Sequence record: MW349129.1
Length of the DNA stretch: 64,000 bases
Strand: one strand, 5' to 3'
Part shown: one piece after another, positions 13,137 through 60,176 of the stretch
Numbering within the stretch: the stretch's first letter is position 1
Layout: the number at the start of each line of letters is the position of its first letter
Program-made: the position numbers and the translations under genes
The notes under the pieces: model-generated
The model's input: only the letters and a program-made list of their open reading frames with translations
Databases searched by the model: none
Told to the model about the DNA's origin: nothing

Positions 13137-13177
13137 TATTATTCACTTCCTTTAATTTCATTTATTTTGAAATAATA

Positions 13178-13217
13178 TATGCGGATATGACATATAATAA
13201 ACTGTCATATCCGCATA
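13178..13217 (-). terminator. Stem-loop/terminator between two tail genes
   Basis: Perfect 15-bp inverted repeat TATGCGGATATGACA / TGTCATATCCGCATA. Confidence 0.7.
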
Positions 13218-13267
13218 ATCTTTACTATATAAAAGAGATGTTCTTCTATTTATTCAAATCATTAACT

Positions 13268-16200
13268 TTATTTACCTGAAAATACTGGTATAGCAGATCT
13301 CACGTCAATATTGAATTGATCTCCATAAGCTCTATTAATAGCTTCTTGAAGATCAGAATCTCCTTGTGAAGGTCCATTATTATTACCAGGGTTGATAATA
13401 ATAGTATCTCCATTTCCATTATTGCCACCTGTACCAGGATTATATGGATCATTAGGATTAACAATGACATTTCCATTATTTCCGTTATTACCATTGTTTC
13501 CATTTTGTCCGTTATTACTATTATTGCCATTTTGTCCGTTATTACCGTTGCTACCATTATTTCCATTTGCACCATTGATAATATCTGGATTATTTTGTAA
13601 ATTATCTTTAATGATTTTATCAATTTCTTTATTAATTTCTTTGATAATTACATTACCTTTAGAATCAACTAAGTCACCTTTATTATTGATAGTTGTGTTA
13701 TTAAAGATATTGTCACCTTTATTAATAGTAGTGTTATTACCTTTAAATGACATTTTTCTAAGTTGATCTAACATCTTAGCTGTATTCTTATCAATATTAC
13801 TTGTATGCTTAGTAATTTCATCTAAATCCATACGTTTTTGCTTATCAACTTTCATAGGTCCATTTTTGTAAGATACTGTAGAGTTATTATAATTATTAGT
13901 AATGTTATAAATATTTCTTACAGTATTATTATCACCTTGAATTGTTTGATGAGTAGTAGAATTGTTGGTTGTAGTTCCCGGTGAAGTATAGTTATTATTA
14001 ACTATGGTAGAATTAGTATTCCCCCCATTATTAATTACAGTACTTCCGCCAGAAGAACTTCCTGATCCTTGTTGTTGAGATTGACCTGGCATTGATGAAG
14101 ATGATCCATCTTGACCAGTTGCACCAGATTGACCATCAGAACCACTAGATCCTGATGAACCTGATGAACCAGAGTCTCCTGATTCACCATCTTCTCCATC
14201 AGATCCTGATGAACCTGATTCAGATTTCTTCTTACCAGCTTCAGATTTAAGCTTTTCTTGTTGTTCTTGATCTATTTTTTTGGCTTCTTCGTAATCAATA
14301 CCATATATTTGAGCGTAACGTTTCATTAAACGATCATTTAATGCTTCTTGTTCTTCTTCATCCATACGGTTATCGTCACGTCCAGTAATGGATCCGTACC
14401 AAGTACCATTTTTGAAACTATATTCTGAAGCTCCTGGTGAACCTCCTGATTCTGAACCTTCATCACTTGAGCTTCCGCTATCAGAACCTCCTTCACCATA
14501 TCTCATATATCCATCAATTCCCCATTTAGGGTTTTTATATTTATTAGCGCTGTTAATAACAACACCATCAACGCCATTAGCTTCTACTTGTTTACCTCCA
14601 CCAATGTACATTGTAACGTGTTCTATATTATCACATAAAATAATGTCACCTGGTTTAAGGTCTTTGGGACTTTTAGCTTTAATTTTTTCAAAAGGCGTAT
14701 CTCCATTCCAGAATGAATGAGTAGTGGCGTTTTTATCCATATCTAAACCAGCTTTTACATAAGCTCTAGCTATCAAACTAGAACAGTCAAAAGAATTAGC
14801 TCCTTGTCTGTTAGGTTGTGAATATTTTGCACCAACCTGTTTCTTAGCCCATGCAACAGCTTTATCAATTTTGGCTTTTTGACTTCCGCCACCGCCACCG
14901 CCTCTTTGTATAGGTGGATTGCCTTTAATTATTCCTGTTCTACGTGAGCTTTTGTTTTTTCCTGATGTAGATGAAACCATGTTAGAAAATTTACTAATAT
15001 CATTTGTATCAGCTATAACTGAACCGGCTCCACCTCCGCCAGCTCCTCCACCTTTTTTCTTAGTAGATTTTTTACCAGAACCACTGAATTGTTTGATAAA
15101 AGCATTACCAGAAGAAATACGTGACCCTAAAGCAGGAACACCAGCTCTTTCATATTTACTTACCCAAGAAGCAGCTGCTTGTTCTACTGTTTTAGTAGTT
15201 TTAAGGTGAGATAAGGCAGCACTTTCTGATCCACTTAATTCTTTCCATAAATAATCTAATTGTAAGTCTAAATCAGACCATTTTTTACCTTTTTCTTTAG
15301 CATATTTCATTAAACCTTGTCTACGAGTATTATCCCATTGAGCAATACCAATACCATAACCAGAAATAGCACTATTAGCTTTTGCTTCATCAAATTTGGC
15401 ATCTCCTTGAACACGATCAGCTTTCATTCCAGATTCATGTGCAAAGTTACCTAAAACACCAGCAGTTTGTTCATCAGAAAGTCCTTTATCTTTAAGGAAA
15501 TTCCAAATTTTCTCTGCACCTTCACCTTCAATTCCGGCTGCATCACTTCCTGAAGATGATGCTGAACTTGATGAAGATGATCCAGAGCCAGCCATAAAAC
15601 CAGCCATGATATCATTCATCATTCCTCCGAGCTTGTCAAACCAGTCTCCAATAGTGTTAACTACTTCTCCACCTGGTTCATTTATATCTAATTTAGATTT
15701 TTTCTTTTTCTTCTTACTTAGTAGAGAATAAAAAGGAGACATACGCATCATAGTTTCTGCTAATTTCTTAGGAGCCTTTTTAAGTTTACTCATAAGATTT
15801 TTAGGCATTAATTTATTCATTTGATGACCAATTCTACCCATTACTGATAATGGTGAATTTTTCATAGCTCCGTCTACATCTTTTTTAATGTCGTCTCTAG
15901 TTTTTCCTGCTGATTCTTCTACTTGTTTCTTAGCATCTTTGTTAGCTTTATCTGACATACCTTGCATTTCTGCTATTTCTTTTTTAGCTCTATCAGATGC
16001 TTCACTTTCAATACCTTCTTGATATGAACCTAATTCTTCTTTACTAGCTTCAGTCATTTCTTTACTCATATTTCCCATTTCTTCTTCATGACTAGAGAAT
16101 TTATCTTTTAACCATCCCCAACCAGATTTAATTAATCCAGTTCCTCCTTGAAGAAGCATAGAAGTCATACCAGTTAAATTACTTAAACCTTTACCGGCTA

Positions 16201-30283: not shown

Positions 30284-30288
30284 TAATT

Positions 30289-30516
30289 ATGAATCCAGAT
30301 ATCAATTTTAATGATAATGGTAAATCTATGGATGAACTATATTCAAGGATACAACTTAGAGCAGCTAAACAAGTAGAAAAAGATATATTGAAAGATAATG
30401 AAGAATATTTTCTAGAAAAAGAAGTAAAAGAACTTAGAGAGCTTGTTTTTGAAGTAGCTAAAAAATATGACGTTAAAGAAATAAAAGATTATTTAGTTAG
30501 AAAAAATATGAAATAA
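30289..30516 (+). CDS. Small protein with C-terminal tag (IKDYLVRKNMK)
   Basis: GGGGGA SD. Confidence 0.8.
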   Translation: MNPDINFNDNGKSMDELYSRIQLRAAKQVEKDILKDNEEYFLEKEVKELRELVFEVAKKYDVKEIKDYLVRKNMK

Positions 30517-30542
30517 AGATTTAAGAAAAGAGTTGAATAAAA

Positions 30543-30734
30543 ATGGCTGAAAACGAACCTGATATTCTTAAAACAATTGAGAAAGTAACCAATGAAATTC
30601 TAGATAAAAATAAAGAATTAAAAAATGAGAATTTGGAACTTAAAGAATTGATATTGGATATTTCTAAAGATCATAATATAGTAGACAAACGTATAACTGA
30701 AATAAAAGTTGATCTAGCAAAAAATATGAGGTAA
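30543..30734 (+). CDS. Small coiled-coil protein with C-terminal tag (LAKNMR)
   Basis: ORF ends at a bidirectional terminator. Confidence 0.75.
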   Translation: MAENEPDILKTIEKVTNEILDKNKELKNENLELKELILDISKDHNIVDKRITEIKVDLAKNMR

Positions 30735-30758
30735 TGACATTAATTTGTCATTACCTCA
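30727..30758. terminator. Bidirectional terminator
   Basis: TGAGGTAATGACA-TTAATT-TGTCATTACCTCA between convergent genes. Confidence 0.8.
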
Positions 30759-30770
30759 ATTATACTGCTT

Positions 30771-32999
30771 TTAGTTATCATATTTATCTTTGTATTCATA
30801 GTAGCTATCAAATTGAACTTCTAAACCTGAGAAAGCTGAAATGAATCCCATTCTGCCTTCCATATTGATGTTTTCAATATCTTTAAAATCAACATCTGGT
30901 TTACGATAATTGAAATTCTTATTTTTGTCTATAAATATTCTAATTCTATTTTCATTTTTAATAATCTTAATATACTTGTTATTAATATCTAATGGAACAT
31001 GATTAGTTAAGAATAATTGTTTTTCTGATTCATCTTGGAATATTTCTTTAGGTTTCCCAAATACTTTATCAATTTCATAGAATCCAGTTTTCATGATACG
31101 GTCAGGATCTGTCATTACATCTTCATCATTCAAATCAAAGTAAGGAACATCCCAATTTTCTTGTTGAGAGGCTATCCAAAGCATATAACCTGAATTGAGT
31201 TGAGTGTTATAATCGAATACGATTCCCGCTCCACCAGTTTTATTTTTATTAATTACTTTAAATGTCATAATGTAATTTTTAGGGAATTTAAAGTTCTGGC
31301 TATAAACATAGTTCAATGCATCGTCATCAAATTTAGTTGTTCCTTCTATGAAGCTAATATAACCATAATTACCTAACGATTGTTTAGATAAAGTTTTATT
31401 ATAAAATCCGGTATAAGTTTGAGTTTCCACAGGAAACGTACCGTATGATCTTAATGCAACTATCATAGGATTAAAGTATATTCCTGATCTACTTTCATCA
31501 TAGAAATAATCAGAACCATCTGGATTTTTAAGTGAATAATTATACTCCAACTCAACTGTATACCAATCTTCTTTAGTTACAATAAATGTATTATCAAATT
31601 CTTCATGACTAATTCCAGCTATTTCAAATTCATCTAAACTAACTTGAATTATTTCATTTGGATCAACGTCATCAACAAAATTTGTTAATTTGACTTCTAT
31701 TTCCATTTTCTTAATATTCTTCATATTGTACATCATATGTTTAAGATATGATTTTTGACCTTGAGTATTATAATTTTTATTATTTGAAGGGAATATATTT
31801 TCTACTTTTCTGACTTTACCTGTATTTGATGTTAATGTGATATCATAAACTAATTTAGCTGTAGGATGATTATTATCTTTAAAGTTAGTTGAATATCCCA
31901 TATTAAACGCAAAGAAATCATAATTTAATAAACGTTTAATATTCATTCTAGGATTTTCATTTTCATCATCTAAAGTTATCTTAACAAATGATGCAGAATT
32001 TTCATCTTCTTTATCAGATTTACTTAAAATATCTCCTTTAACTTCATATAATCCAGTTTCTTGATTAAAGCTTACTGAAGATAATCTTGTTGATTCAAGA
32101 TTAGAATGACTTACATCTTCATCATTAGCTTTTCTTAAGTCAAATATAGCTGTAGGTGCTTTAAATTGATAGTTCTCTGTAGCATTGATTATATTAAAAC
32201 CTTTTCTGTCTGTTATTTTTAATTTAGATGTACCATTTTGTAAAGGTGCAAATAAATATTTCTCTCCTGGTTTAAAGTACATTTTACCCTGAAATTTACG
32301 TGAAAAACCTTTTTTGTAAAATAAGTGTGGTAGAGTTTTCAAGCCATCATTATTAAGTGTAAATGGTTCTACTAAATCTTTATTATCTGTATCAGGTCTA
32401 TAGAATTTATGCTCATGAACTTCATGTCTTTCTCTTAGATATCTATCAGAAGTGATATTCTCTAATTTATCTTCAAAATCTGTTTCAGGTACAAATGGTA
32501 TAATTCTAGGATCGTTATATCCCGGAGTAACTCTACCTGATTTTTCTTCAGTACTTTTCATCATGTGTTTAAAAATAGGTTTAGGATTATTTTCAGTACC
32601 TAATATTTCATTTTCTTCATTAATAATCTTATTTAAATTATTAATGACAGTCTCTGGAAAAATTTTTACAGTATCTGTATTAAATTGATCTACTGTTTGC
32701 ATATCATTAACGAAAAGTAAAAGATACCAAAGATCAGTAGTACCATATAATTCATTAGATAAATATTCAGGTCTATAGTGATATGATTTTGATAAATCAT
32801 AATCTATTAAATCTCGTTTAAGTACATTTTCATATTTTTTTAGTAATGGTAAACTAAAGACAGCTTGTTTTTCAAATAAATACCATTCTGATATATTATT
32901 AAGTAATATTTTATTCGTCTTGGAGTATCCTATTTCATCAGACATTTCAGGTACATCATTTCTACCCATATTGTTATTTCCTACGTCACGAATAAGCAA
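30771..32999 (-). CDS. Baseplate wedge (T4 gp53/LysM-like) protein with a C-terminal lectin-like beta-sandwich
   Basis: YRPEYLSNELYGTTDLWYLLLFVN; C-terminal GAGIVF..RIRIFID..GRMGF..VQFDS. Confidence 0.65.
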   Translation of the reverse strand: MLIRDVGNNNMGRNDVPEMSDEIGYSKTNKILLNNISEWYLFEKQAVFSLPLLKKYENVLKRDLIDYDLSKSYHYRPEYLSNELYGTTDLWYLLLFVNDMQTVDQFNTDTVKIFPETVINNLNKIINEENEILGTENNPKPIFKHMMKSTEEKSGRVTPGYNDPRIIPFVPETDFEDKLENITSDRYLRERHEVHEHKFYRPDTDNKDLVEPFTLNNDGLKTLPHLFYKKGFSRKFQGKMYFKPGEKYLFAPLQNGTSKLKITDRKGFNIINATENYQFKAPTAIFDLRKANDEDVSHSNLESTRLSSVSFNQETGLYEVKGDILSKSDKEDENSASFVKITLDDENENPRMNIKRLLNYDFFAFNMGYSTNFKDNNHPTAKLVYDITLTSNTGKVRKVENIFPSNNKNYNTQGQKSYLKHMMYNMKNIKKMEIEVKLTNFVDDVDPNEIIQVSLDEFEIAGISHEEFDNTFIVTKEDWYTVELEYNYSLKNPDGSDYFYDESRSGIYFNPMIVALRSYGTFPVETQTYTGFYNKTLSKQSLGNYGYISFIEGTTKFDDDALNYVYSQNFKFPKNYIMTFKVINKNKTGGAGIVFDYNTQLNSGYMLWIASQQENWDVPYFDLNDEDVMTDPDRIMKTGFYEIDKVFGKPKEIFQDESEKQLFLTNHVPLDINNKYIKIIKNENRIRIFIDKNKNFNYRKPDVDFKDIENINMEGRMGFISAFSGLEVQFDSYYEYKDKYDN

Positions 33000-33032
33000 G
33001 ATTATTTCACTTCCATTCTTATTTTGTTATAA

Positions 33033-33044
33033 TAAATGCATGTT
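33033..33044 (-). promoter_or_regulatory. Putative late promoter
   Basis: Minus strand AACA-TGCATT-TA. Confidence 0.6.
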
Positions 33045-33096
33045 AAAGTTCAAGTGACCATATTAATAAAAAACTAAAAATTTCAACTAATAATTT

Positions 33097-33116
33097 AAAT
33101 ATATATTATTTTAATG
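33097..33116 (+). promoter_or_regulatory. Putative early promoter
   Basis: AAATATATATTAT-TTTAAT-G plus hairpin. Confidence 0.7.
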
Positions 33117-33182
33117 AGATTGAGATAAATTAATCTTAATACTCAAAAATAAAAATTGTTAATTATAAGGAGAGATTTGGAT

Positions 33183-34727
33183 ATGGCAAAAGTAAAATAC
33201 TCACAAACAAAATTATTGGTAAGAGCAGCATTTAGATCAGATGAAATTATCAACGTAGTTGGTGATGGAGGAATTGGTAAAACACAAATGATGAGAGATA
33301 TTGCTGAAGAAGATAATATGAACTTCATTACAATTGCTGCAAATAACTTAAAAGAAGGGGAATTATCTTTACCAATGTTATCACAAAAAGATAATGAAGT
33401 TATCTATGCTCCAATGGATAAAATTAAGTTAGCTAATAGTCTTTTTGATAGATATAAAGAATATCAAAGAGAAGGTGGAAAACAATATTCACGTAAAGAC
33501 CTTTCTTTAAAATCTGTTGATGAATTAAAAGAAATTTATGTGAAATTGACTGGTAAAGATATTGTTGATTATTATGAGGATACTCATGAAAACTATGTTA
33601 ATAAAGTATTTAACAAAGCTAGAGTTAAAAATGTTAAATATAGTAAAAATGATTTAATGAAAAAATCATTTGACGAGTTAGATGAAATTTATACAGAATT
33701 AACAGGTAAAGAATTAAGAGATAAAATTGGTAAAGGTTTCTATATCAAAGAAATTTTAGAAGCAGTTCCAAGACCTTATACTCTATTATTCATTGATGAG
33801 ATTGGTCGTACAGACCAACAAGTACAATCAGAGTTAATGAACTTCTTATTAGAACGTCAAGTAAACGGTTATCATTTACCACCTAATGTTAAAATCGCAC
33901 TAGCACAAAACCCATCTTCAGATATGCCGGGATTTGAAGATTCAGAATATGCAGCAACTTCTATGGATAACGCTGTAAGTTCACGTATCACATTTGTGCA
34001 CATGATTCCAGATATTGAAAGTTGGGTAGACTTTGCTACTAAATATAAAGATGGTTCAGAAAAGCAAAATATTCATCCATCTATTGTTGAGTTTGTAACT
34101 GAAAAAGAGAGTACTGAATACTTATTCAGACCTCAAAAAGAAGCTGGTAAAGATTTCAATGATACGAATCCACGTTCTTGGGAAATGATCTCTAACATGC
34201 TATATGTATTAGAAGAAGATGACATGTTTAAATTCTCTAATAGAGAAGAAGAGAAACGTAAGAAGAAAGATACTTTACAATTCTTCACTGAAGGTAAAAT
34301 TAATAGTGATTTAGCAAACTTATTTGTTAAATTCTATATTGAGAAACAAGCTAAATTACCTCGTCCAAGTGATATTCTATTTGAATATGATAAAGGTAAA
34401 ATGGTTCCTCGTAAAGAATTAGCTAAACAGCATATTGAAGTTATTGAAAGTCAATCAACTATTAGACAGTTAACATTGAAAACTTCAATGATTAACTACT
34501 TAAAAAATAATCCTGATTTAGCTGAAGAGCAAGTTATTCAAATTGCTGTAGAAGCTTTATTATTAGGTAAAGTTGAAACTAATGCTACACCAATTAGATT
34601 AATTTCTAGACTTTCAGAATCTACTGAAGAGTCAGACCAAGAATTATATGAGAAATTCACTGATAACGAACTATACAGTGACAAAGCATTTGCACTATAC
34701 GAACAAATGGTAGGAAGTTTAGGATAA
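33183..34727 (+). CDS. MoxR-like AAA+ ATPase
   Basis: GDGGIGKT, LLFIDE, SSRITF, NPRSWE; AAGGAG SD favours ATG 33183. Confidence 0.85.
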   Translation: MAKVKYSQTKLLVRAAFRSDEIINVVGDGGIGKTQMMRDIAEEDNMNFITIAANNLKEGELSLPMLSQKDNEVIYAPMDKIKLANSLFDRYKEYQREGGKQYSRKDLSLKSVDELKEIYVKLTGKDIVDYYEDTHENYVNKVFNKARVKNVKYSKNDLMKKSFDELDEIYTELTGKELRDKIGKGFYIKEILEAVPRPYTLLFIDEIGRTDQQVQSELMNFLLERQVNGYHLPPNVKIALAQNPSSDMPGFEDSEYAATSMDNAVSSRITFVHMIPDIESWVDFATKYKDGSEKQNIHPSIVEFVTEKESTEYLFRPQKEAGKDFNDTNPRSWEMISNMLYVLEEDDMFKFSNREEEKRKKKDTLQFFTEGKINSDLANLFVKFYIEKQAKLPRPSDILFEYDKGKMVPRKELAKQHIEVIESQSTIRQLTLKTSMINYLKNNPDLAEEQVIQIAVEALLLGKVETNATPIRLISRLSESTEESDQELYEKFTDNELYSDKAFALYEQMVGSLG

Positions 34728-40147: not shown

Positions 40148-40861
40148 ATGTTAGTTAAAAAAGAAAAATTAAAGAATAGAAATGATATTAGAATAGATCA
40201 TATTATAAGTATTAATTTAGATGATCCTTCTTCACTTAATATGGTTTCTTTTCAATTATTAATAGAAAGTAATATTCTGAGTTGTTATATTAATAACAAC
40301 TTGGATACTACTTTATTTACTAAAAAAGAATTAGATAAATATAATAAATTCATAGATTTTGCTATTGATAATTTTGAATCAAATGGTTTATTTATAAATA
40401 AAAAACCAGATGAATTTCTAACTGGTTTAATAAGAAAAGCTTCTATTTCTAGATTATTTAAAATGATTGACCCAATTGATAAAACTATCAGTAATGAAAA
40501 TTTATTTATTACTAGATTAAAAAATATTAGATATAATATAAATGAGACTGATAGTAAAGATTTAGCTTACTTCTTATATACTAATTTTAGAGAAGATATA
40601 CCATTAGATAGATTAAAAGGTTTAATGTATAATCCACATTTAACATCATTATTTGAGTATTTAATGAATGGTAATTTAATAATGGAGATTGATGAGCAAT
40701 TATTAAATAAATGGATTATGTTTATTGATTATGAAATAGATGCTATTAAGGGACCTAATTATTATAGATTAAGACATAGTTTAGTTAATGTAATTAATAA
40801 GTATAATAATATACAAGAAGCTAAAGGTTATTTAGGATATGAAAGATTAGAATTAGAATAA
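40148..40861 (+). CDS. Hypothetical protein
   Basis: AAAGGAG SD. Confidence 0.85.
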   Translation: MLVKKEKLKNRNDIRIDHIISINLDDPSSLNMVSFQLLIESNILSCYINNNLDTTLFTKKELDKYNKFIDFAIDNFESNGLFINKKPDEFLTGLIRKASISRLFKMIDPIDKTISNENLFITRLKNIRYNINETDSKDLAYFLYTNFREDIPLDRLKGLMYNPHLTSLFEYLMNGNLIMEIDEQLLNKWIMFIDYEIDAIKGPNYYRLRHSLVNVINKYNNIQEAKGYLGYERLELE

Positions 40862-40890
40862 ACTTGAAGTTTAGTGAAGGGAAATTTTGA

Positions 40891-41550
40891 ATGGAGAAAT
40901 TTAGAAATGAATTAATAAACCATTATACTGATTTGCTAAGATTTAAAGATGATTCTTATTATTATTATAGATTAAAAATTAATTATTTGAATTTCGATTT
41001 TTCTAAAAATGTAAATTTAAGAAAAAGTAATGTGTTTAAATTAAATGATAAAATCAGCTTTTTCTTATATTTTAAAATTTTAATCCAAGATTTTATTTCA
41101 AATAGTTTAGATGAAAGTAGCGTGTCATTAATATTTTCAAGTGATTTTGATAATAATAATTTTATTTCTATATTATTCACTAAGTATGGTTCTGATATTG
41201 AATTGAAATTAGATTTAGGTGTATATTATGATTTACATGCAACTAAAATAGCTTTAATAGATTTAAATGAAGAGTTTCATACAGAATATTCGGACGATAG
41301 TGTTATAATTCATACAGATGAAGATAATTTTGAAAATGTAGTTTATTCTCTTCTAAACAAAATTAAATTCATTTTAGGAAATATATATTTATTTAATTTA
41401 TCTTTATTTAAAAATGGAGTGATAGAAGATAGTAATATATTTTATTTAGAAGAGATCGAAAATGTATTTAATGTCAGAAAGAATAGTATAATTGAAGAAC
41501 TTTCTGAAAGTGAAGTTAAAAAATATAAAATCAAAGAAGGGTTTAAATAA
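40891..41550 (+). CDS. Hypothetical protein, tag end EVKKYKIKEGFK
   Basis: AAGGG SD. Confidence 0.85.
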   Translation: MEKFRNELINHYTDLLRFKDDSYYYYRLKINYLNFDFSKNVNLRKSNVFKLNDKISFFLYFKILIQDFISNSLDESSVSLIFSSDFDNNNFISILFTKYGSDIELKLDLGVYYDLHATKIALIDLNEEFHTEYSDDSVIIHTDEDNFENVVYSLLNKIKFILGNIYLFNLSLFKNGVIEDSNIFYLEEIENVFNVRKNSIIEELSESEVKKYKIKEGFK

Positions 41551-42734: not shown

Positions 42735-43968
42735 ATGTCTAATCAAGATAATAAATATGAACGTAAAAGAGCTATAACAGGTTATTTAGAGAATTTAATC
42801 AAATTAATTAAAATAAGAAAACCTGATATTGATAATGAAAAATTAATTAATGCTTGTAGAGAGTATATTAAAAAACATGTAGATCCAGCTTTAATAGAAA
42901 TATCTGGACAAAAAATGAATGTGGATACAACCTTAAGACAAATTATTGATAATAATTTAATTGTAACTGGGTCTGGTTCTATTTATCAACCTCAATCACA
43001 AAGAAAAAATTTAAATGCAGATATGTTAAAAGACTTTATAGATTCTCGTAAAGTAGCTAAGCACAATATGTTTATTTATAAAGGTAAAGATGATGTTTTA
43101 CATGATAAATATATGAATGAACAAAAAACAATTAAGATCTTAGCTAATAGTTATTACGGTGCTATGATTCAGAAGAATAGTACATTCTATGATTCTAATT
43201 CAGGTCCAGCAACTACTTATAGTGGTGTTGATATTGTAACTACTTCAGCAATAGCTTTAGAAAGATTTATTGGTGGTAAAATCTTCTTTATGAATATTGC
43301 TGAAATATATCATTATATATTAAGAATAATTAATGAGAAATATGAAGATCATGATATTAAGATAAAATCAATTCCGACTGATAGAAAAATTCTAGAAGAT
43401 TTAGTTTCTAATATTGAAGAAGATTATAGTGAAGAAGAGTTTCTTAAATTAGAAGATGTATTTAGTAAATTAAGTCAAGAAGATAAAAATAAAGTATATT
43501 TCAAAAATAATTTATCTGGATTAATTGATCATACCGATATATTTGAGAATAAAATTAGCAAAATGACTGGTAGAGAAGATTTCTTAGATCCAAACGAACC
43601 ACCTGAAGATTTGATTCCATTATTAGATGAATTATTTGAGATATTAAAAGATTGGGTTATATATAATTATCAAGATTACAATAGAATGTATAGAATGAAT
43701 TACAAGAAACGTAGAAGTGTTCTCACAATTGACACAGATTCAAATTTCGTTCACTTAGATCCATTATATGAAAAAATGAAATCATTAAAACCTGAAGATT
43801 TCCCTATTGCAGAAAATGGTTTAGAAGATAAATTAGAACAACGTGTAGGTAATATATCTATTATTAACTATCAAATAACTAAATTATTAGAATTATCTTA
43901 CTATAGATTCTGTAAAGATGTAGGATTAGAAGAAGAACATTTAGGTTTAATATCAATGAAAAATGAGT
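42735..43968 (+). CDS. Family B DNA polymerase (split type), exon 1
   Basis: KILANSYYG (motif B), TIDTDS (motif C); joins 44155-44855 to give a 644-aa protein. Confidence 0.88.
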
Positions 43969-44154
43969 ATTATCAAGTTAATGCTCCGTTGTATAGTGAT
44001 ATACAGAAAGACAAATTTATTAATTGCTGGGATAATTCATTAATTAAATCAGCATCTTAAGAAATTAAGTTCAACGACTAAATATAAATATACTTAATAT
44101 AAAGTATAAGATATAGTCTAATCTTTGTTAAATTAATAAAGACTAATAAAAATG
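43969..44154 (+). ncRNA. ORF-less group I intron (186 nt)
   Basis: AATTGCTGG (P), AATCAGCA (Q), GTTCAACGACTA (R), AAGATATAGTCT (S); P1 GAGU/GCUC with U.G pair; terminal G; splicing restores MKNE-F-LLDKQ..KKKTYAS. Confidence 0.9.
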
Positions 44155-44855
44155 TTTTACTTGATAAACAATTAACAACTGATAAAAAGAAAACTTATGC
44201 ATCATCAGTAATTCAACAAGAAGGTAATTTAGTTCAACCACCAGATTTAGATGTTAAAGGTATGGCTATCAGAAAAGTAAATACTAATAAACGTATTAGA
44301 GAATTATTTACTGAAATATTACAAAAAGATATTTTAGAAAATAAAACTGGTGTAGATCGTATTAAGATAATACGTAAATTTAAAGATATTGAAGAAATGA
44401 TTAAGAAATCATTAGATAATGGAGAAATTGAATTCTTAAAACCATTTAAGGCTAATAATGCTGAGGTATATAAAGATCCTTACTCTCAAATGGCATATAG
44501 AGCTGCTTTAGCATGGAATATAATGTACCCAGAAAAAGAAATAGCACTACCTGCTAAGATATTAGCAGTTAAATTAAATATTAGTACATTTGGAGATATT
44601 AAAAATAAGATAACTGATGAAGATACTTTAAATAGATTTAGAGAAGTATTTAAGAATGAAAGTTTAGTTAAAAATGGTTTAAATGTAATTGCAGTTGAAG
44701 GTAATACAATTCCTGAAGAGTTTAGACCTTTTATTGACTATGATAGTATGATTGAAGATCATATTAAACCAGGTAAAGATATTATTGAATCTATAGGAGT
44801 TAGAGTATTGGAATCTTCAAATAGCTCATTTGTATCTAATATGATTAAATTCTAA
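44155..44855 (+). CDS. Family B DNA polymerase, exon 2
   Basis: KKKTYAS..QEG..LDVKGMAIRK (KxY motif, thumb); open in frame upstream of the track ATG at 44262. Confidence 0.88.
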
Positions 44856-45578: not shown

Positions 45579-46901
45579 ATGGAGTATATTAACACTATGG
45601 CAAAACAATCAGATGTAAAAGGACAAAATGAAAATTTGTACCGAAAAAATGGCAGAAAAATACCGGCAAAACAAAGGAAAATGGATGATAATGGTACATG
45701 GTTTTACAGATTTGACCAAAATAGATTTATAATTGATAATATTATGAGATTCAATGAAGATAAAGAATTAGTGAAGCTATTAAAAGAATATAGAAAAAAT
45801 AATAAAGATTACTTTAATAACAATGCTTATTTCTTTAAATTTAATAGAGATGTAACTATTTTTAATGATTATCAAATTTCAATATTTTTAAGTGATATTA
45901 TTAAAGAACATGTTGGAAAAGACTTCTTAAAAGATATTACTTTAAGTGATAATTCTAAATTAATGATAAAAGATACAGGTGATATGGAAGTATGGGCAAG
46001 AGAACCTGAAACTAAAAATTTGTATGATCCACATAAACTTGATTTGGATTTATATAAAATAATATCATATGTGGACTATGAAAGAGATTTAATTATTATT
46101 AATATGATTGAAAATGAAAGTCCTAAGATGTTTAGCTTAGTTATTAAATCTTTAGATCGTATTGATGAAGAAGATATTAGATATAATGAAGAAGAGAAAG
46201 AAATTCAAATCAAATTCACAAAGTCTAATTTAAGAAAAGTATTGACTAGATGTAATAGTAAAACTTTTAAGACTATTTTACCTTTTACGTATAATTATGA
46301 AGGGTTTGATGAAGAACATTCTATCGTATTAGATAAATTTAGTAAAACATATATTAAACAGATTGAAAAAGAAGAATATGATACAAGACAAAAAATTGGT
46401 GGTCAACCATATCATTTAAGACCTGAAAATAGACCTTATTTTGCTAAACGTAGAAAAATAAAAGATTGGGAAGTACTTGAAGTATTTGATGAAAATAAAG
46501 ACGGTTATAAATTGTTTAGTGTTAAAGATAAATCCAGTGGAGTTATTTATTTAGTTTATTATACTGGTAAGGATTATCATGGTAAAGGTATTTTAAAACA
46601 AGGTAAGGATGTGCCAAGATTACAAGATCCTTCCAATTATAGAAAAGCAGTAAAAATAAAAGATATTTATTATTCTGTATTAATGACACAAGCAAAATAT
46701 AATTTAATGAAGAAGAATAAATTTGATTTGTATACATCATTTGATTCATCAAAATTAAAATACTTAACTGTGGTTGATGAAGATAATAATGACTCAACAG
46801 ATTTTCTAGATAATTCTACAGTATTTAAAATAAGACAGATTACTTTTGATGAAAATAAATTAGAACCATTAAAAGATAAATTTATCAAGGATTATGAATA
46901 A
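45579..46901 (+). CDS. Hypothetical protein (about 435 aa)
   Basis: Long ORF; the start may be ATG 45597 behind GGAG. Confidence 0.8.
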   Translation: MEYINTMAKQSDVKGQNENLYRKNGRKIPAKQRKMDDNGTWFYRFDQNRFIIDNIMRFNEDKELVKLLKEYRKNNKDYFNNNAYFFKFNRDVTIFNDYQISIFLSDIIKEHVGKDFLKDITLSDNSKLMIKDTGDMEVWAREPETKNLYDPHKLDLDLYKIISYVDYERDLIIINMIENESPKMFSLVIKSLDRIDEEDIRYNEEEKEIQIKFTKSNLRKVLTRCNSKTFKTILPFTYNYEGFDEEHSIVLDKFSKTYIKQIEKEEYDTRQKIGGQPYHLRPENRPYFAKRRKIKDWEVLEVFDENKDGYKLFSVKDKSSGVIYLVYYTGKDYHGKGILKQGKDVPRLQDPSNYRKAVKIKDIYYSVLMTQAKYNLMKKNKFDLYTSFDSSKLKYLTVVDEDNNDSTDFLDNSTVFKIRQITFDENKLEPLKDKFIKDYE

Positions 46902-49077: not shown

Positions 49078-49103
49078 AAAAAATTTCTTTCCATTCCCCA
49101 TGA

Positions 49104-49115
49104 AACATTAATCTA
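49104..49115 (+). promoter_or_regulatory. Intron-internal putative late promoter for the endonuclease
   Basis: AACA-TTAATC-TA, 16 nt before the SD. Confidence 0.55.
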
Positions 49116-49143
49116 TTAATAAATAGATATTGGAGAGATAAAA

Positions 49144-50280
49144 ATGGTAATAAAAACAATTGATGAAATTAATAAAGAATTAAATGATAAAAATCTATTT
49201 CTGCTAGAAGAGTACAAAGGAAAAGTTGCGTATGAGCATAAGTTAAAGTGTGGAATCTGTAATACAATATTTGATAAGAAACTTAATTATGTATTTAGAA
49301 ATGAATTAGGGTGTAACGTATGTGCAAAAGAGAAAAGATCTAATACTAGAAGAGGTAAGAATTATCTAGAAAATATGATTGGTAAAGATGAAAATTACAA
49401 GTGGTTGGAAAAATTACCAAAATATATTAAAGATATAAAAAAAGTTAAACTTCGTATATTGCATGAAGATTGTGGTAATGAGTATCTAGTTTCTGTCACA
49501 CAGTTTCAAAAGGGTAAAGGTCGTTGTAAGTTTTGTTATAAAATGAATAATGAAATTATAAATGCACCTTTAAATGAAAATTACCAAAATATCATTAATG
49601 AAAGAAAAGAAGAAAGAACCAAACAGAGAAATGATATTAAAAAAGATAACAGAAGATATAGTAAAGTAAATACTAATATTCTTGAAGAGTCTATTCAAAA
49701 AAGAATGGATGGAAATGAATATGAATGGCTAGAAGAATACTCATATAACAATAAAGATAAACACTTCATAAAGCATAAAAAATGTAATTATGTATACGAA
49801 GTACGTCCTAATGATTTTCAACAAGGTTACAGTTGTCCAAATTGTTCTCGTAAATCTAGTAAAATAGAAAGAAATATTGTAAAGTATCTATCAGAAAATT
49901 CTATTTCATTTGAATTAGAAAGAAAATTAGATGTATATAAATACGATATCTATTTACCTGAAGAAGAGCTTTACATTGAAATTGATGGAGAACAGCATTT
50001 TGACAAAGATAGTACTTGGAATCAGAAAAGTAAAGTAGTAGAAAATGATAAAAAGAAAAATGAATTGATTATTAAAAACAATTTAAAACTATTAAGAATA
50101 GCTTTTCATAGTAAAAAAGATAAAATCAAAGATACAATGGAATTATTTGATTCTTTTATGAATAATGGAAAATTAAATAATAAAAGAATATCTTTATTAA
50201 AAGAAAGTGAAGATGATTTATCAGATTACTATGAATTCAATAACCAAAGATCTATTAGAAATCTATATTGCCGTCATTAA
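49144..50280 (+). CDS. Intron-encoded homing endonuclease (zinc-ribbon repeats plus Vsr/DUF559-like EDxHD-type nuclease domain)
   Basis: Three C/H-x2-C..CxxC units; YDIYLP..YIEIDGEQH..NDKKKN..LLRI. Confidence 0.82.
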   Translation: MVIKTIDEINKELNDKNLFLLEEYKGKVAYEHKLKCGICNTIFDKKLNYVFRNELGCNVCAKEKRSNTRRGKNYLENMIGKDENYKWLEKLPKYIKDIKKVKLRILHEDCGNEYLVSVTQFQKGKGRCKFCYKMNNEIINAPLNENYQNIINERKEERTKQRNDIKKDNRRYSKVNTNILEESIQKRMDGNEYEWLEEYSYNNKDKHFIKHKKCNYVYEVRPNDFQQGYSCPNCSRKSSKIERNIVKYLSENSISFELERKLDVYKYDIYLPEEELYIEIDGEQHFDKDSTWNQKSKVVENDKKKNELIIKNNLKLLRIAFHSKKDKIKDTMELFDSFMNNGKLNNKRISLLKESEDDLSDYYEFNNQRSIRNLYCRH

Positions 50281-50549
50281 ACCTTTTGAACTGCTGGAAG
50301 TTTTCTATAATTTAATTAACTACAAAGTAACTGGAAACGGTAAGCTTGAATGTCTGAAAATAATTAAATTGAAATAATCAGCATCGAAGATCCTTTAAAA
50401 TGGATAACGTTCAACGACTATCGAAAAGTGAGCTTTATGTCGAGAGGACCTATTGCAATATAACTGAGTAGAGTAGGGATATGGGGAATCCCGAAGCGGA
50501 AGGGAGTATATAGTAACGCATATACTTATGATATAGTCTAATACAAATG

Positions 50550-55787: not shown

Positions 55788-56411
55788 TTGGATAAGACAT
55801 TATATGTATCAGATATATTAGATGAAAAAATTATAGGAAGAAAGGATCTTAATAAAGATGAACTTTTTGATTTGTCATTTAATACAATTTTAAATAATTC
55901 TGATGACAATAGATTTAATAAAGAAGGATTTAGTTTAATGTTAACGTTTTCAAAAGGATTAATTTTAAAATTTGATTATACAGACAAATATTTTTATGTG
56001 AAAGATTTTATATTTTTAATAGAAAAAGTTGATGGCAACTATGAATTTAATTTTACATTAAGTATTCCAGAATTTACAGACAGTAAAATTGAAATTGGAT
56101 TAGGAATTTTTGAATCTGAAAAAGGTCATAGAGAATTTTATTTTAATGATTTTTCTTGTTATAAAGAAGGAAAAACTTTATTAGAAAGAGCTAAAGAATA
56201 TTTAACGGATGATATTTTTAATAATTATGGATTAAGTATCAATATTTTTACATTGAAAAATAAAAATAGAATTTTGTCAGATTATGATTTTGTCATAAAT
56301 AATAATGATATAGATGAGATTTACAGTTTAAAAAATATAGACAAATTATTTAAAGAAGTAACAAATGAGAAAGAAATTAAAAACTATTTAACTAAAGAAA
56401 ATTTTAAGTAG
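55788..56411 (+). CDS. Tag-family protein
   Basis: Ends EVTNEKEIKNYLTKENFK; TTG start behind AAGGAGG. Confidence 0.85.
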   Translation: MDKTLYVSDILDEKIIGRKDLNKDELFDLSFNTILNNSDDNRFNKEGFSLMLTFSKGLILKFDYTDKYFYVKDFIFLIEKVDGNYEFNFTLSIPEFTDSKIEIGLGIFESEKGHREFYFNDFSCYKEGKTLLERAKEYLTDDIFNNYGLSINIFTLKNKNRILSDYDFVINNNDIDEIYSLKNIDKLFKEVTNEKEIKNYLTKENFK

Positions 56412-56456
56412 AGTGAAGTAAAAATAATTATTTAATTCAGAAAGGGTTTAGTTAAT

Positions 56457-57059
56457 ATGGAAATGAATTTAGATTCTTATGAATATTATTATAATGATGA
56501 TGAAAAAGTTTTAGCTAAAACACCAGTTGATATATCAAAAGAAACTACTAATAAAAAGATTTCAATTGAATACTATAAAAATATATTTAAAAAAGATTTT
56601 TATCTGTTTCGTAAACAAATTATTGGAACTCATGTAATATTCGACAGTGATTCTTTGCATAAAATAATTAATAAGAGTGATGGAACATCTGTACCAGGAT
56701 TTAATTTATTATTAGATTTTGAAGTTCTTAGTGTTTCAAGAGAAATTATCTTGAAACTAAGTTTTTCAATTAATGATTCTAAATTCTTTAAAACATTTGA
56801 TAAAAGTAAAGATATTTTAGAATTTTCAAAAATGAGTTCTATATATTACGATCATGTAGAGGATAACCTTGAAGATAAAATGGCATATTTATTAGCTAAA
56901 CTATTCTTTGATATGCATGTGAATGAGAATGAAGATATCGAAATTTATTTAGAGGATAAATTTAATGAAATGTTAGATATATCTAAACCGTATAAATACT
57001 TTAGATTGTTAAATGAAAAAGAAGTTAAAAAACACTTAACAAGAGAAGGATTTAAATAA
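56457..57059 (+). CDS. Tag-family protein
   Basis: Ends LNEKEVKKHLTREGFK. Confidence 0.85.
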   Translation: MEMNLDSYEYYYNDDEKVLAKTPVDISKETTNKKISIEYYKNIFKKDFYLFRKQIIGTHVIFDSDSLHKIINKSDGTSVPGFNLLLDFEVLSVSREIILKLSFSINDSKFFKTFDKSKDILEFSKMSSIYYDHVEDNLEDKMAYLLAKLFFDMHVNENEDIEIYLEDKFNEMLDISKPYKYFRLLNEKEVKKHLTREGFK

Positions 57060-57130
57060 ACATTTTTAATGAATTTAATTAACTTTCTTTTATATTAATA
57101 AATATAATGAAAGAGAGTTGAATAAGATAA

Positions 57131-57910
57131 ATGTCTGAAACTAATGAAATTGATTTAATATCACAAATCAATGATATGATGGATGAGTATAAAATGTTAG
57201 TTAAATTTAAAGATAAAATGGAAAATAAAGAAATTCAATTAGAAAATCGTATACAGGATTTAACTAAGAATCTGAAATATCCTAAACATACATTCGTATC
57301 TAATATGGAAGCTAATATTATCAGTGTAGAAAAAGAAATTAAAGATACTATTATGCAAATGAAAAATGTTAAAAAAGATATTATTGACTTAACTATGAAA
57401 GCTCAGAAAATGGCTGAAGATGATGAATCTGAAGATAATTACAAAACTCTTGCTAAAAATGTACTTAATGAGCTTAATAATATGTCTAATAAAGATATTC
57501 TAAACAGTATGATGGAACCTGAAGAAGTAAATGATGAAGATACTGATTTTAGTGAAGAATTGGATGCGAAATTATCACAATTAGATGAAGAAGAGAAATC
57601 TATTAATAAAGAAGTAGATCAAAAAGAAGAATTAAGCGAAGAAATTAATGAACTAGACCAACAAGATTTATCTTCTATATTAAAAGTCTATAAAGGCACA
57701 TTACAATTCTTTGTTATAGGAGATTCTCCTGAAGAATATGAATTAGTAGTTGCTGATATGGATATGAATATTATTGAAGAAGATGAAATGAAAGATGAAT
57801 ACCCAGAGTTATTTACTATGACTAGAGATCTATTATTTGAAGATGTTGAAGGTAATGATGAAATAGTTACAGATGATTTTGGAAATATTTATCAAAAAGC
57901 AGAATTTTAA
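57131..57910 (+). CDS. Acidic coiled-coil protein
   Basis: 259 aa, heptad N-terminal half, D/E-rich C-terminal half. Confidence 0.85.
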   Translation: MSETNEIDLISQINDMMDEYKMLVKFKDKMENKEIQLENRIQDLTKNLKYPKHTFVSNMEANIISVEKEIKDTIMQMKNVKKDIIDLTMKAQKMAEDDESEDNYKTLAKNVLNELNNMSNKDILNSMMEPEEVNDEDTDFSEELDAKLSQLDEEEKSINKEVDQKEELSEEINELDQQDLSSILKVYKGTLQFFVIGDSPEEYELVVADMDMNIIEEDEMKDEYPELFTMTRDLLFEDVEGNDEIVTDDFGNIYQKAEF

Positions 57911-57920
57911 ATTATTTTAC

Positions 57921-57951
57921 CCCATAATATATTAATACAATATATTATGGG
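57921..57951 (+). terminator. Stem-loop/terminator
   Basis: CCCATAATATATT / AATATATTATGGG. Confidence 0.7.
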
Positions 57952-57980
57952 TATTTATTATATAGGAGAGTGAAATAGAT

Positions 57981-58106
57981 ATGTTAAAAAGATTATACAA
58001 TTTATTAACTAAGAAAAAATTTGAAAAGAGATTATACGACTTTAGATTTAATTATCAAGATCATGAACATCTAAATCAAGTTCATAGAGATTCAAATAAT
58101 ATATAA
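57981..58106 (+). CDS. 41-aa microprotein missing from the ORF track
   Basis: AGGAG SD; MLKRLYNLLTKKKFEKRLYDFRFNYQDHEHLNQVHRDSNNI*. Confidence 0.6.
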   Translation: MLKRLYNLLTKKKFEKRLYDFRFNYQDHEHLNQVHRDSNNI

Positions 58107-58125
58107 TATGAAAGGATGATTATTA

Positions 58126-58527
58126 ATGTTATCAGAATATAGATTAAATTCAAGTAAAGAAAATATTAAACAGCTATTAAGAGATTATGGTTTTAAAAAG
58201 GACTCTTATACTAAAGCTTTATTATATAGAAAACGTGTAACTGATCCAAATGATATTTTATTCATAGTAGCTGAAGTAGTTATTGAAACTAATTCAGATC
58301 TAGTTAAATTAAATTACTATGATAGTAAACATAATAGATTTAATCCTTCTAATGAATCACCAGAAGTTCAAAAGGGATTAAGTATATTAGAAGATATGAA
58401 AGAAAAAGAATTATTAATTGAACCAGAATTAACTCGAAATGAAGAAGAAAAAGAAGTTCTTGATAAACTTAAAAAACAACGTGAAGAAATGGAAAATGGT
58501 CAAGTATCACCCAATTCTGAAAATTAG
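58126..58527 (+). CDS. Hypothetical protein
   Basis: GAAAGGA SD. Confidence 0.8.
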   Translation: MLSEYRLNSSKENIKQLLRDYGFKKDSYTKALLYRKRVTDPNDILFIVAEVVIETNSDLVKLNYYDSKHNRFNPSNESPEVQKGLSILEDMKEKELLIEPELTRNEEEKEVLDKLKKQREEMENGQVSPNSEN

Positions 58528-58530
58528 AAT

Positions 58531-58550
58531 AAATATATATTATAAAAATG
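58531..58550 (+). promoter_or_regulatory. Putative early promoter
   Basis: AAATATATATTAT-AAAAAT-G plus hairpin ATCCCAATACTA/TAGTATTGGGAT. Confidence 0.75.
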
Positions 58551-58595
58551 TTATCCCAATACTATTAAATTAGTATTGGGATTATTATACTAAAA

Positions 58596-59414
58596 TTGGA
58601 GATGAAATGGATAATGACAAAATATTTTATAGATAAAGAGAAAGATGAATTAATTGAAATTGATAGGAATTATCTTAACCGATATGAATATATTGCATAT
58701 GTATTAACTACTATGGATATTAATAATCTTTTAAGTAGTAAAGGATATGCTAAATCTTTCATAGATAATATTTCTAAAGAAGAAGATTATATGAATTTTC
58801 ATTATAAAGAAATTGATAATGATATTTATTTTATAGACAAACATAATAAAAATGATGCTCTTAAAAGATTTAATACTAATTTTCATATTAATTTTAATAC
58901 TAGTAGAATGGATAAAATTGAAAGTGGAGAATTTAAATTAGATTTTTATTTTGAAAATTCATTATATAAAAAATATTTCAATGTAATTACTAATGGTTTA
59001 GTAAATAAAAATAATTTAGTTAATGAAGGAATAAATGAAAAAACGAGAGCTTTTATACATGTTAAATCATTTGAAAAAGGTTTATATGATATCAAATATA
59101 GTAATGAATTATTTACGGACGTAAATTTTCCAATACCTGCATTTGAGAAAAATCCTATTATTAAATTTATAGAAGATTTTAAGGATTTATTCTTTATCAT
59201 ATTATATCAGAATAATCTTAGTGTATTAATGTCTCTTTATGAGATTAAATATATGTATAAAGATGATATAGAATTTTATATTAGTTTCTCCAGTAAGGGT
59301 GGCGGTTTAATTAATTTATTAGATCTAATAGAAAGTGATGAAAATGATTTATTTAAAGAAATTAAAACCGAAAAAGAAATGAAAGCTTTTAAAGTTAGAA
59401 AAGGATTCAAATAA
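58596..59414 (+). CDS. Tag-family protein
   Basis: Ends FKEIKTEKEMKAFKVRKGFK; the start may be a few codons downstream. Confidence 0.8.
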   Translation: MEMKWIMTKYFIDKEKDELIEIDRNYLNRYEYIAYVLTTMDINNLLSSKGYAKSFIDNISKEEDYMNFHYKEIDNDIYFIDKHNKNDALKRFNTNFHINFNTSRMDKIESGEFKLDFYFENSLYKKYFNVITNGLVNKNNLVNEGINEKTRAFIHVKSFEKGLYDIKYSNELFTDVNFPIPAFEKNPIIKFIEDFKDLFFIILYQNNLSVLMSLYEIKYMYKDDIEFYISFSSKGGGLINLLDLIESDENDLFKEIKTEKEMKAFKVRKGFK

Positions 59415-59435
59415 TATAAAGAAAGGATTTTCATA

Positions 59436-60176
59436 ATGGAATACAATAATTATTATAGATATAAATTAGATGGAAAAATACTTCACTTTGATATGGATAG
59501 AACTGATTTACGTAGAGATAAATTGGCTGAAATATTTACTAAAGTTAAGATGGAATATATTTATAAAGATGAAAAAATGATTAAAGAACCAAGAAACTTT
59601 ATTTACCGATCTAATCTTTCTTTAGAGTATTCTCATTTTAAAGATAAGGTATGTGAAATCAGACAAATTTCTAAAATAATGGGTAAAAACTATTTAAAAG
59701 ATTTATTAATTTACGATACAGATATTAGTTTAAGTTTTAATTCTATTTTAGATGGAGCTATATTTAAAAAAGATTTTCCAGAAGGATCTTTTCATGACAA
59801 AATAGAAAGTAATATGAATAGAAAATATTTAATTTTAAGTGATAATATAAGTCATACTAGTGAAAATTTTGTTGATTTAAATGATAAAGATTATATTTTA
59901 AATTTTGAAGAAGTAGAATTGCTGATCAAAGAATTTAATAGAACTCTTTTAAATTATCTTATGGATTTAATGAGCTATGGAGATTTAAAATTAAATGTTA
60001 GGAAATCAGATTTAGCATATTTTATGACAGGAATATATACAAAAATGGAAGAACACGAAGATAAATTATTCCCTATATTTGATTATAAATTTTTACTTAA
60101 TGAATCTGGATTATTTGAAGAGATTACAGATGAGAAAGTTATTAAAGAATATTTAGTGAAAAATAATTTTAAATAA
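59436..60176 (+). CDS. Tag-family protein
   Basis: Ends FEEITDEKVIKEYLVKNNFK. Confidence 0.85.
   Translation: MEYNNYYRYKLDGKILHFDMDRTDLRRDKLAEIFTKVKMEYIYKDEKMIKEPRNFIYRSNLSLEYSHFKDKVCEIRQISKIMGKNYLKDLLIYDTDISLSFNSILDGAIFKKDFPEGSFHDKIESNMNRKYLILSDNISHTSENFVDLNDKDYILNFEEVELLIKEFNRTLLNYLMDLMSYGDLKLNVRKSDLAYFMTGIYTKMEEHEDKLFPIFDYKFLLNESGLFEEITDEKVIKEYLVKNNFK

Follow-up and report, generated by a model that had tools for sequence, protein, structure and literature searches.

Positions 43969-44154 of the DNA studied here very probably form a group I intron. Its host pre-mRNA encodes the catalytic subunit of the family-B DNA polymerase, which is essential to Madawaska, an AR9-like jumbo phage of Staphylococcus aureus. 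The window, meaning the whole stretch of 64,000 nt that was analysed, corresponds to bases 62001-126000 of the Staphylococcus jumbo phage Madawaska record MW349129.1, with 100% identity in the polymerase region. Window positions are record positions minus 62000, and intron base n lies at window position 43968 + n. Madawaska DNA is presumed to be uracil-substituted, as in AR9 (Korn et al., bioRxiv 10.1101/2020.12.14.422802).

An intervening sequence at this site is already on record. The GenBank CDS CPT_Madawaska_108 (DNA polymerase catalytic subunit) is annotated as two joined pieces, 'predicted based on alignment' with the protein of AR9. Korn et al. (bioRxiv 10.1101/2020.12.14.422802) inferred introns from protein alignments, giving no intron type or structure, in genes for DNA polymerase subunits, several RNA polymerase subunits, the prohead protease, terminase and gyrB. 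Since group I introns in phage polymerases are classical and the interruption had been annotated beforehand, the bare fact is ordinary. Apparently undescribed, by contrast, is the family to which it belongs, whose group I introns are very small (about 142-190 nt), lack an endonuclease and number 12-33 per genome in some Staphylococcus jumbo phages. The searchable literature contains no description of the polymerase intron as a complete group I core of less than 200 nt, of its membership in a multi-copy ORF-less family, of the 9- and 14-nt exons that separate neighbouring copies, or of the co-occurring orphan gene CPT_Madawaska_111. A literature search for the smallest known group I intron returned only the general statement that most exceed 200 nt (PMC3160393).

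Host gene and insertion site

The features of the window that bear on the argument are:

42735..43968, + strand: exon 1 of the DNA polymerase catalytic subunit (family B), from the translation and the GenBank two-piece join
43969..44154, + strand: ORF-less probable group I intron, 186 nt, from alignment to S6, helices and covariation
43974-43986: internal guide sequence, in which G43983 pairs with U43968
44155..44855, + strand: exon 2 of the DNA polymerase catalytic subunit, starting FLLDKQLTTDKKKTYAS (KKxY motif)
45597..46901, + strand: orphan gene CPT_Madawaska_111, 434 aa, from its co-occurrence with the intron family
49078-50549: second group I intron, 1472 nt, in the virion RNA polymerase beta' N-terminal gene

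The open reading frame that begins at 42735 encodes motif B (KILANSYYG) and motif C (TIDTDS) in exon 1, meets stops from 44058, and reopens in the same frame further downstream. The preliminary description of this DNA had proposed that splicing removes in-frame stops. Joining 43968 to 44155 does remove four of them and reads MKNEFLLDKQLTTDKKKTYAS, and the intron-less allele of phage S6 matches the joined sequence. Such alleles, which that description had suggested looking for in relatives, exist in S6, PALS_2 and DC4, where a 2124-nt query aligns with 91% coverage in two pieces spanning 1938 bp, 186 fewer. The S6 sequence (...ATGAAAAATGAATTTTTACTTG...) equals the window with 43968 and 44155 joined, apart from one synonymous difference (GAA for GAG).

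In a gapped alignment of Madawaska with S6, the 186-nt insertion occupies record positions 105969-106154 (window 43969-44154) with zero sliding freedom, and its flanks, with slashes at the junctions, are GAGT/ATTATC...AAAATG/TTTTAC. Thus, the 5' exon ends in U (...AAUGAGU, at 43968) and the intron in G (G44154). The final four bases of exon 1, GAGU, are the exon strand of P1, and exon 2 bases 44156-44163 are that of P10. The intron has a G+C content of 21%. Its lack of an endonuclease, stated in the preliminary description, is borne out: counting from 20 aa upward, the only ORFs overlapping it are the exon 1 run-on, one of 26 aa and an antisense one of 32 aa, the longest apart from the run-on.

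The polymerase of Madawaska is encoded by two genes about 21 kb apart, one for the catalytic subunit, in the window, and one for the exonuclease subunit (record 127205-129079). The latter gene has a 153-nt mini-intron of its own, which is without P2.

Core helices, the mini-intron family and probable splicing

In intron numbering, the helices of the polymerase intron are:

P1: exon GAGU plus AUUA (1-4) with UAAUGCUC (11-18), 8 bp, U-1 opposite G15
P2: 22-27 with 32-37, loop GUGA (L2, 43996-43999)
P3: 47-52 with 116-121
P4: 57-62 with 81-86
P5: 65-69 with 74-78
P6: 88-92 with 97-101, loop GAAA (L6, 44061-44064)
P7: 108-112 with 146-150 (window 44076-44080 with 44114-44118), C107 bulged, possible A106-U151 pair
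P8: 122-127 with 134-139
P9: 154-162 with 166-174
P10: exon +2, +3 and +5 to +9 with intron 13, 12 and 10 to 6

The complete P1-P10 core, the U.G pair at the 5' site and the terminal G had all been claimed before, and every helix listed then is legible in the sequence. P10 had been given as 5 bp; the helix is present but that length does not stand, since seven of nine positions pair in the canonical register adjoining P1, with two U.U mismatches. U43968 pairs with G43983 in P1, the omega-G is G44154 at a junction set by the intron-less S6 allele, and the P3-P9 core includes a P4-P6 domain and a P3/P7 pseudoknot. G108-C150 in P7, next to the bulged C107, has the sequence of a guanosine site. 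The P5abc, P7.1/7.2 and P9.1 extensions are absent. In the minimum-free-energy fold P1, P2 and P4-P9 all appear; its energy is -42.2 kcal/mol, compared with -26.9 +/- 3.5 for shuffled sequences (z = -4.4).

A scan with group I models had been recommended, and its outcome is divided. Rfam RF00028 aligns end to end on the intron and spans the conserved J3/4-P4, J6/7-P7 and J8/7-P7 motifs, with matches to AAUUGCUGGG, UCAGCA, GUUCAACGACUAAA and AAGAUAUAGUCUAA. However, the alignment reaches only 16.9 bits (E = 0.09 for 701 nt), where the gathering score is 50, and at the gathering threshold Rfam has no match anywhere in the 64,000-nt window. RF00028 also gives no match at E up to 1 over the clear 1472-nt HNH intron of the window, and is therefore insensitive to this lineage. 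As read from its sequence, the polymerase intron has every group I feature named above, the Rfam score alone excepted.

When the intron alone was used as a blastn query, matches were obtained in Madawaska (9), MarsHill (7), LY01 (16), Machias (14), AH12 (14) and PB50 (4) but not in S6, PALS_2, DC4 or SA1, and no similarity was found outside Staphylococcus jumbo phages. Copies in the Machias virion RNA polymerase beta' gene and the PB50 beta gene align along the entire intron, with compensatory changes in P2, P3, P6, P8 and P9. A covariance model (R1) was built from four copies and applied to the window, to genomes and to the Machias locus, with these results:

Window: 1 copy
Madawaska whole genome: 12 copies
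LY01 (OR836606.1): 33 copies
Machias polymerase gene: 2 copies
S6: none, apart from one 27-bit match

The weak S6 match, at 7939-8069 of an S6 piece, lies between S6_0080 and S6_0090, the locus at which Madawaska and LY01 carry prohead protease introns, and may be a degenerate or divergent intron. Compact relatives of 170-215 nt (42-63 bits) occur, several in each, in metagenomic viral contigs from IMG/VR whose size (270-384 kb) is that of jumbo phages.

Covariation was assessed in an alignment of 37 copies, with P7 entered as a pseudoknot. Standard pairs fill 97.3% of cells, compared with 71.6% after shuffling and 29-46% with slid partners; both partners vary in 34 of the 46 pairs, and P4 and P7 do not vary at all. 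A second set of 16 other copies is 96.6% paired (67.5% for its comparison). RNAalifold, run on a plain MAFFT alignment unfitted to the proposed structure, returned P2, P4, P7 and P8. Two motifs that fit the RF00028 consensus, GUUCAACGACUA and AAGAUAUAGUC, are near-invariant in the family (exceptions in 2/37 and 1/37 copies), and L2 is a GNRA loop in most copies. Bases 152 and 179 (window 44120 and 44147) covary as A-U (13), G-C (13) and G.U (3), and are predicted to link the 3' tail with the core in a contact resembling P9.0.

Orthologues of the polymerase intron behave in the same manner. In LY01 and an ENA metagenome contig all helix changes preserve pairing (P5 A-U to G.U, P8 A-U to G.U and P9 G.U to A-U, the last shared by a DNA metagenome run), and the other changes fall in loops, with L2 going from GUGA to GCGA, still GNRA. 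Machias carries an orthologous mini-intron at the exact same site (GAGT/AT...GTAAATGCTCC...AAACG/TTTTACTTG). Its P1 loop is without the CAAGU segment, yet P1 and P10 stay in the same register and P10 is kept with a different sequence (UUUAC/GUAAA); the exons of the two phages are about 83% identical and the introns about 70-77%. The exact presence/absence polymorphism, the Machias orthologue at the same site and the covariation in 37 paralogues together uphold the earlier proposal of a group I intron with its junction at 43968/44155.

Splice junctions elsewhere in the family were taken from gapped alignments of LY01 and Madawaska genes with intron-less S6 genes; a brute-force LY01-versus-S6 junction search was not used, as short seeds were drowned by chance matches in A+T-rich DNA. 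Every cleanly aligned copy follows a U and ends in G. In each of them, the conserved G of the guide is followed by three to seven bases complementary to the copy's own exon end, as in the exon/guide sets GAGU/GCUC, GUGGGU/GCUCAC, CUGGGU/GCUCAG, GACGGU/GCCGU and AUGGAAU/GUUCCAU. GGU closes 8 of the 11 cleanly defined 5' exons, a bias that would be compatible with spread to sites matched by an inherited guide, and AAAUG is the 3' end of most family members. The polymerase intron, at 186 nt, is the largest of the family in Madawaska, because the other lengths defined by S6 are 184, 178, 174, 171, 159, 155 and 153 nt; S6 alignments define LY01 members of 142-157 nt. In several short members P2 is absent and P8 is cut to a few bases. 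The copies lie in essential genes, at conserved catalytic motifs.

Because Rfam is blind to the mini-introns, the polymerase, RNA polymerase, terminase and gyrase genes of LY01 are annotated as fragments, and so is the one PB50 gene checked, that for RNA polymerase beta. The interrupted LY01 genes appear as separate hypothetical proteins. LY01 often has three or four family copies in one gene (e.g., record 176465-176811, 137548-138832 and 40374-41146), and in its beta' gene two introns have only a 9-nt exon (TTTGACGGT) between them. Three LY01 CDS of about 1.15 kb are annotated as transposase or mobile element protein (pieces 33010-34158, 12341-13483 and 30287-31435), one of them within the polymerase gene region, upstream of the mini-introns; these may be IStron-like or intron-borne elements.

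Further peculiarities were observed in Madawaska. The terminase large-subunit gene (record 56296-59741), which could not be reconstructed by Korn et al. (bioRxiv 10.1101/2020.12.14.422802), contains a homing-endonuclease CDS (57007-58029), directly after which come two family copies (58028-58190 and 58205-58363) separated by a 14-nt exon. For the intron in the gene of the C-terminal part of virion RNA polymerase beta (record about 156023-156200), a junction after U and after G would leave Madawaska with two codons more (HADS-PR-IGM) than intron-less S6 (HADSIGM).

We infer that the polymerase intron is spliced, since the phage has no second catalytic-subunit gene and is nevertheless viable; the Madawaska isolate forms plaques, as do MarsHill, LY01 and Machias, each with one such gene. 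By the standard chemistry of the group I pathway, the transcript would fold into the minimal P1-P10 core, with the guide UAAUGCUC paired to the end of exon 1 and U43968 held in a U.G wobble. A guanosine bound at G108-C150 of P7 would attack after U43968, P10 would hold the 3' exon, and the terminal G44154 would enter the same guanosine site before the exons are ligated. Ligation would restore one 646-codon frame between motif C (DTDS) and the KKxY motif. Unaided folding of this RNA is uncertain, because its G+C content is only 21%, the usual peripheral stabilisers are missing and L9 is not a GNRA loop.

The sequencing runs examined held no spliced product assignable to an intron-bearing phage. 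The single joined contig from an RNA-type library, 165 nt of bat metagenome cDNA (window 43832-44176), passes from 43966 to 44155 with AT between; it carries the S6-like GAA allele, and is therefore best read as an intron-less phage and was rejected as spliced RNA. The samples that contain relatives of Madawaska-type phages differ widely (bat, tick, food fermentation and chicken gut).

It is extremely improbable that the insert stays in the RNA and that the gene yields two polypeptides, is a pseudogene or is read by ribosome bypass. The downstream ORF does have an ATG of its own at 44262, and the Madawaska polymerase is already split into separate catalytic and exonuclease genes. However, a restart at 44262 would drop the KKxY motif, and the insert has a covariation-supported ribozyme fold with canonical U and G ends. 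Furthermore, viable phages carry this element in a dozen further essential genes, where it sits at conserved catalytic motifs. The bypass in T4 gene 60 covers 50 nt, and we know of no precedent for one of 186 nt.

Endonuclease-bearing relatives and inheritance

The group I intron reading extends to the second, 1472-nt intron of the window, which is inserted after TTTGACGGT (the ADFDGD catalytic motif) and likewise follows a U and ends in G. An HNH endonuclease ORF (49144-50280; phrog_559) lies in its P1 loop, and its guide, UUGCCGUC, lies where that ORF ends. Additional helices stand between its P7 and P8, its J8/7-P7 strand and 3' tail are common to the mini family, and neither Rfam nor the R1 family model detects it. 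At the same ADFDGD site LY01 has a 157-nt mini-intron.

The HNH-bearing intron in g270 of Bacillus phage AR9 also has the J8/7-P7 motif and 3' tail of the mini family, and experimentally determined mature mRNA sequences for AR9 are referred to by Korn et al. (bioRxiv 10.1101/2020.12.14.422802). Introns of this AR9-like HNH type (AR9 g270/g271 and window 49078-50549) resemble the mini-introns in belonging to the same phage group, in residing in RNA polymerase subunit genes, and in their GUUCAACGACUA and GAUAUAGUCU motifs and 3' tail ending in AAAUG. They differ in their length of 1.2-1.5 kb, their HNH ORF and the extra P7-P8 helices. Given the motifs shared with AR9 g270 and the 1472-nt intron, and the LY01 mini-intron at the same site as the latter, the mini-introns look, on sequence grounds, like reduced relatives of the endonuclease-bearing introns of AR9-like phages.

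How the mini-introns came to occupy so many sites is a separate matter. The family would have reached new sites through pairing of the guide sequence (reverse splicing) or through a factor acting in trans, and individual copies would afterwards have been inherited vertically or by recombination between co-infecting phages. The polymerase intron could instead be a passive passenger, gained once in an ancestor, vertically inherited since, lost precisely from S6, PALS_2, DC4 and SA1, and without current mobility, which we consider possible though somewhat unlikely. Orthologous copies occupy this site in both major lineages, the divergence from the Machias copy (about 70-77% identity) resembles that of the exons (83%), and the intron contains no endonuclease ORF. 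Paralogues within a genome are also old: those of Madawaska share 44-74% identity with one another (median 56%), and there has therefore been no recent burst.

Against a purely passive history stands the all-or-none distribution, 12-33 copies or zero in phages that do not form separate clades, which under vertical descent would need many independent precise losses. In addition, at the nearest informative exon sites, -2 and +26, Madawaska agrees with the intron-bearing LY01 and S6 differs. These sites, only two and not universal in their pattern, hint at a short co-conversion tract. A strict link between G at -2 (GAG) and the intron was rejected, an intron-less metagenomic allele also being GAG.

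The orphan gene and known systems

CPT_Madawaska_111 lies 1.4 kb downstream of the polymerase intron. By tblastn it is present in all six phages that have the intron family and absent from S6, PALS_2, DC4 and SA1. Only one other real gene is common to Madawaska and LY01 and lacking in S6, and in the wider set its presence does not follow that of the introns. The protein is fast-evolving, at 59-70% amino-acid identity where neighbouring genes have about 90%. It has no match in Pfam, PHROGs, NCBIfam, PDB sequences or the ESM Atlas, nor among 5.8 billion clustered proteins or 1.84 billion representatives.

This gene is a candidate intron-associated factor for splicing or mobility, on correlative evidence only. 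The preliminary description had speculated that the intron may need a protein or RNA helper and could be mobilised in trans, and for this idea the gene offers a single circumstantial lead. As a refinement of the group I intron reading, the mini-introns may depend on it, with the protein serving as cofactor in folding or splicing or promoting mobility in trans; we regard such dependence as unlikely on balance but worth stating. It is found in exactly the six family-bearing phages and in none of the four intron-free relatives. Judged by RNA polymerase protein identity to Madawaska (S6 group 99.3%, LY01 97.7%, SA1 94.3%, Machias group 88%), the intron-bearing phages do not form a single clade, and the pattern therefore requires at least two joint gains or losses of the gene and the introns. 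The sole other gene shared by Madawaska and LY01 to the exclusion of S6 fits the introns badly in the wider set, and in two metagenomic lineages homologues of the protein again adjoin a polymerase gene with a mini-intron. Furthermore, members of 142-159 nt with no P2 and almost no P8, in essential genes, are hard to square with robust unaided folding.

Against dependence, the link is correlative and covers ten genomes and two contig lineages, all related, and at a distance of 1.4 kb linkage alone could account for part of the pattern. The protein cannot be recognised as a member of any nuclease, maturase or RNA-binding family, and its AlphaFold2 model (pLDDT 42) is unusable. One metagenomic lineage has a homologue of the gene without an intron at the Madawaska polymerase site, which argues against a homing enzyme specific to that site. 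A phage reverse transcriptase was dropped as a mobility factor; it also occurs in the intron-free SA1, and therefore does not correlate with the introns.

The strongest form of the proposal is that these are the smallest natural group I ribozymes with a complete core (186 nt for the polymerase intron, about 142-184 nt for relatives without P2 and most of P8), that they have colonised 12-33 sites per genome in some jumbo phages, some with exons of only 9-14 nt between them, and that they depend on CPT_Madawaska_111 for splicing or spread. We hold this to be quite doubtful; the dependence, if true, would explain why a related phage has the whole family together with the protein, or neither.

The family is of wider use because its group I cores, supported by covariation, form a natural series that shrinks from 186 to about 142 nt. 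Comparison along it reveals which elements can be dropped (P2, P8 and loop contacts), and it offers a new minimal model below the size of the Azoarcus intron. Dozens of ORF-less copies with site-matched guides in one genome are a testbed for spread without an endonuclease of the intron's own, in which reverse splicing and a factor in trans can both be tested. The all-or-none pattern and the orphan protein point to a possible new kind of intron cofactor.

The group I intron of Azoarcus tRNA-Ile, at 205 nt, usually serves as the reference for how small a self-splicing group I intron can be. The preliminary description had placed the polymerase intron below it, and the exactly aligned ends put the difference at 19 nt, with relatives down to about 142-159 nt. 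The two are similar in size, are without an ORF and have a minimal P2-P9 core whose P2 is capped by a GNRA loop. However, the Azoarcus intron is G+C-rich and interrupts a tRNA anticodon loop, whereas the polymerase intron has 21% G+C and interrupts a protein-coding phage gene, its host RNA thus being an mRNA. L9 is GAAA in Azoarcus and a 3-nt AAU/AUU loop here, so the L9-P5 contact of subgroup IC3 is not evident. No sequence relationship between the two is detectable outside the universal core.

The ORF-less introns of phage Twort (orf142 I1-I3 and nrdE) are about 250 nt long and belong to subgroup IA2, with P7.1/P7.2. Twort is likewise a staphylococcal myophage with several short ORF-less group I introns, several of them in one gene. 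In the Madawaska intron, however, the gap from P7 to P3' (J7/3) is only 3 nt (AAU), with no room for P7.1/P7.2. The polymerase intron thus fits neither IA2 (P7.1/7.2 absent) nor IC3 (L9 not GNRA, host not a tRNA). The copy number of 12-33 per genome is far above that in Twort and the K-like phages, the latter cited as an intron precedent by Korn et al. (bioRxiv 10.1101/2020.12.14.422802).

In SPO1/SP82, Bastille (I-BasI) and the T7-like phage phiI, as in Madawaska, a group I intron lies in a conserved part of the phage DNA polymerase gene (references listed in PMC3984707). Those polymerases are of family A and most of their introns carry or adjoin a homing endonuclease, whereas the Madawaska polymerase is of family B and no recognisable endonuclease lies inside or next to its intron. 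In collaborative homing, a free-standing endonuclease acts together with an ORF-less intron at its target site (PMC3984707). The known cases (cyanophage S-PM2 psbA and phage phiI) share with Madawaska an ORF-less intron and a variably present gene close by. Unlike in those cases, the neighbour at 45597-46901 has no recognisable nuclease motif and, in one lineage, is present without an intron at the polymerase site.

Finally, degenerate putative group I introns of 56-81 nt are described in Phialophora rRNA genes (PMC3160393). They too fall far below the usual minimum of about 200 nt for group I introns, but they are without most of the catalytic core, whereas the Madawaska intron keeps every core helix.
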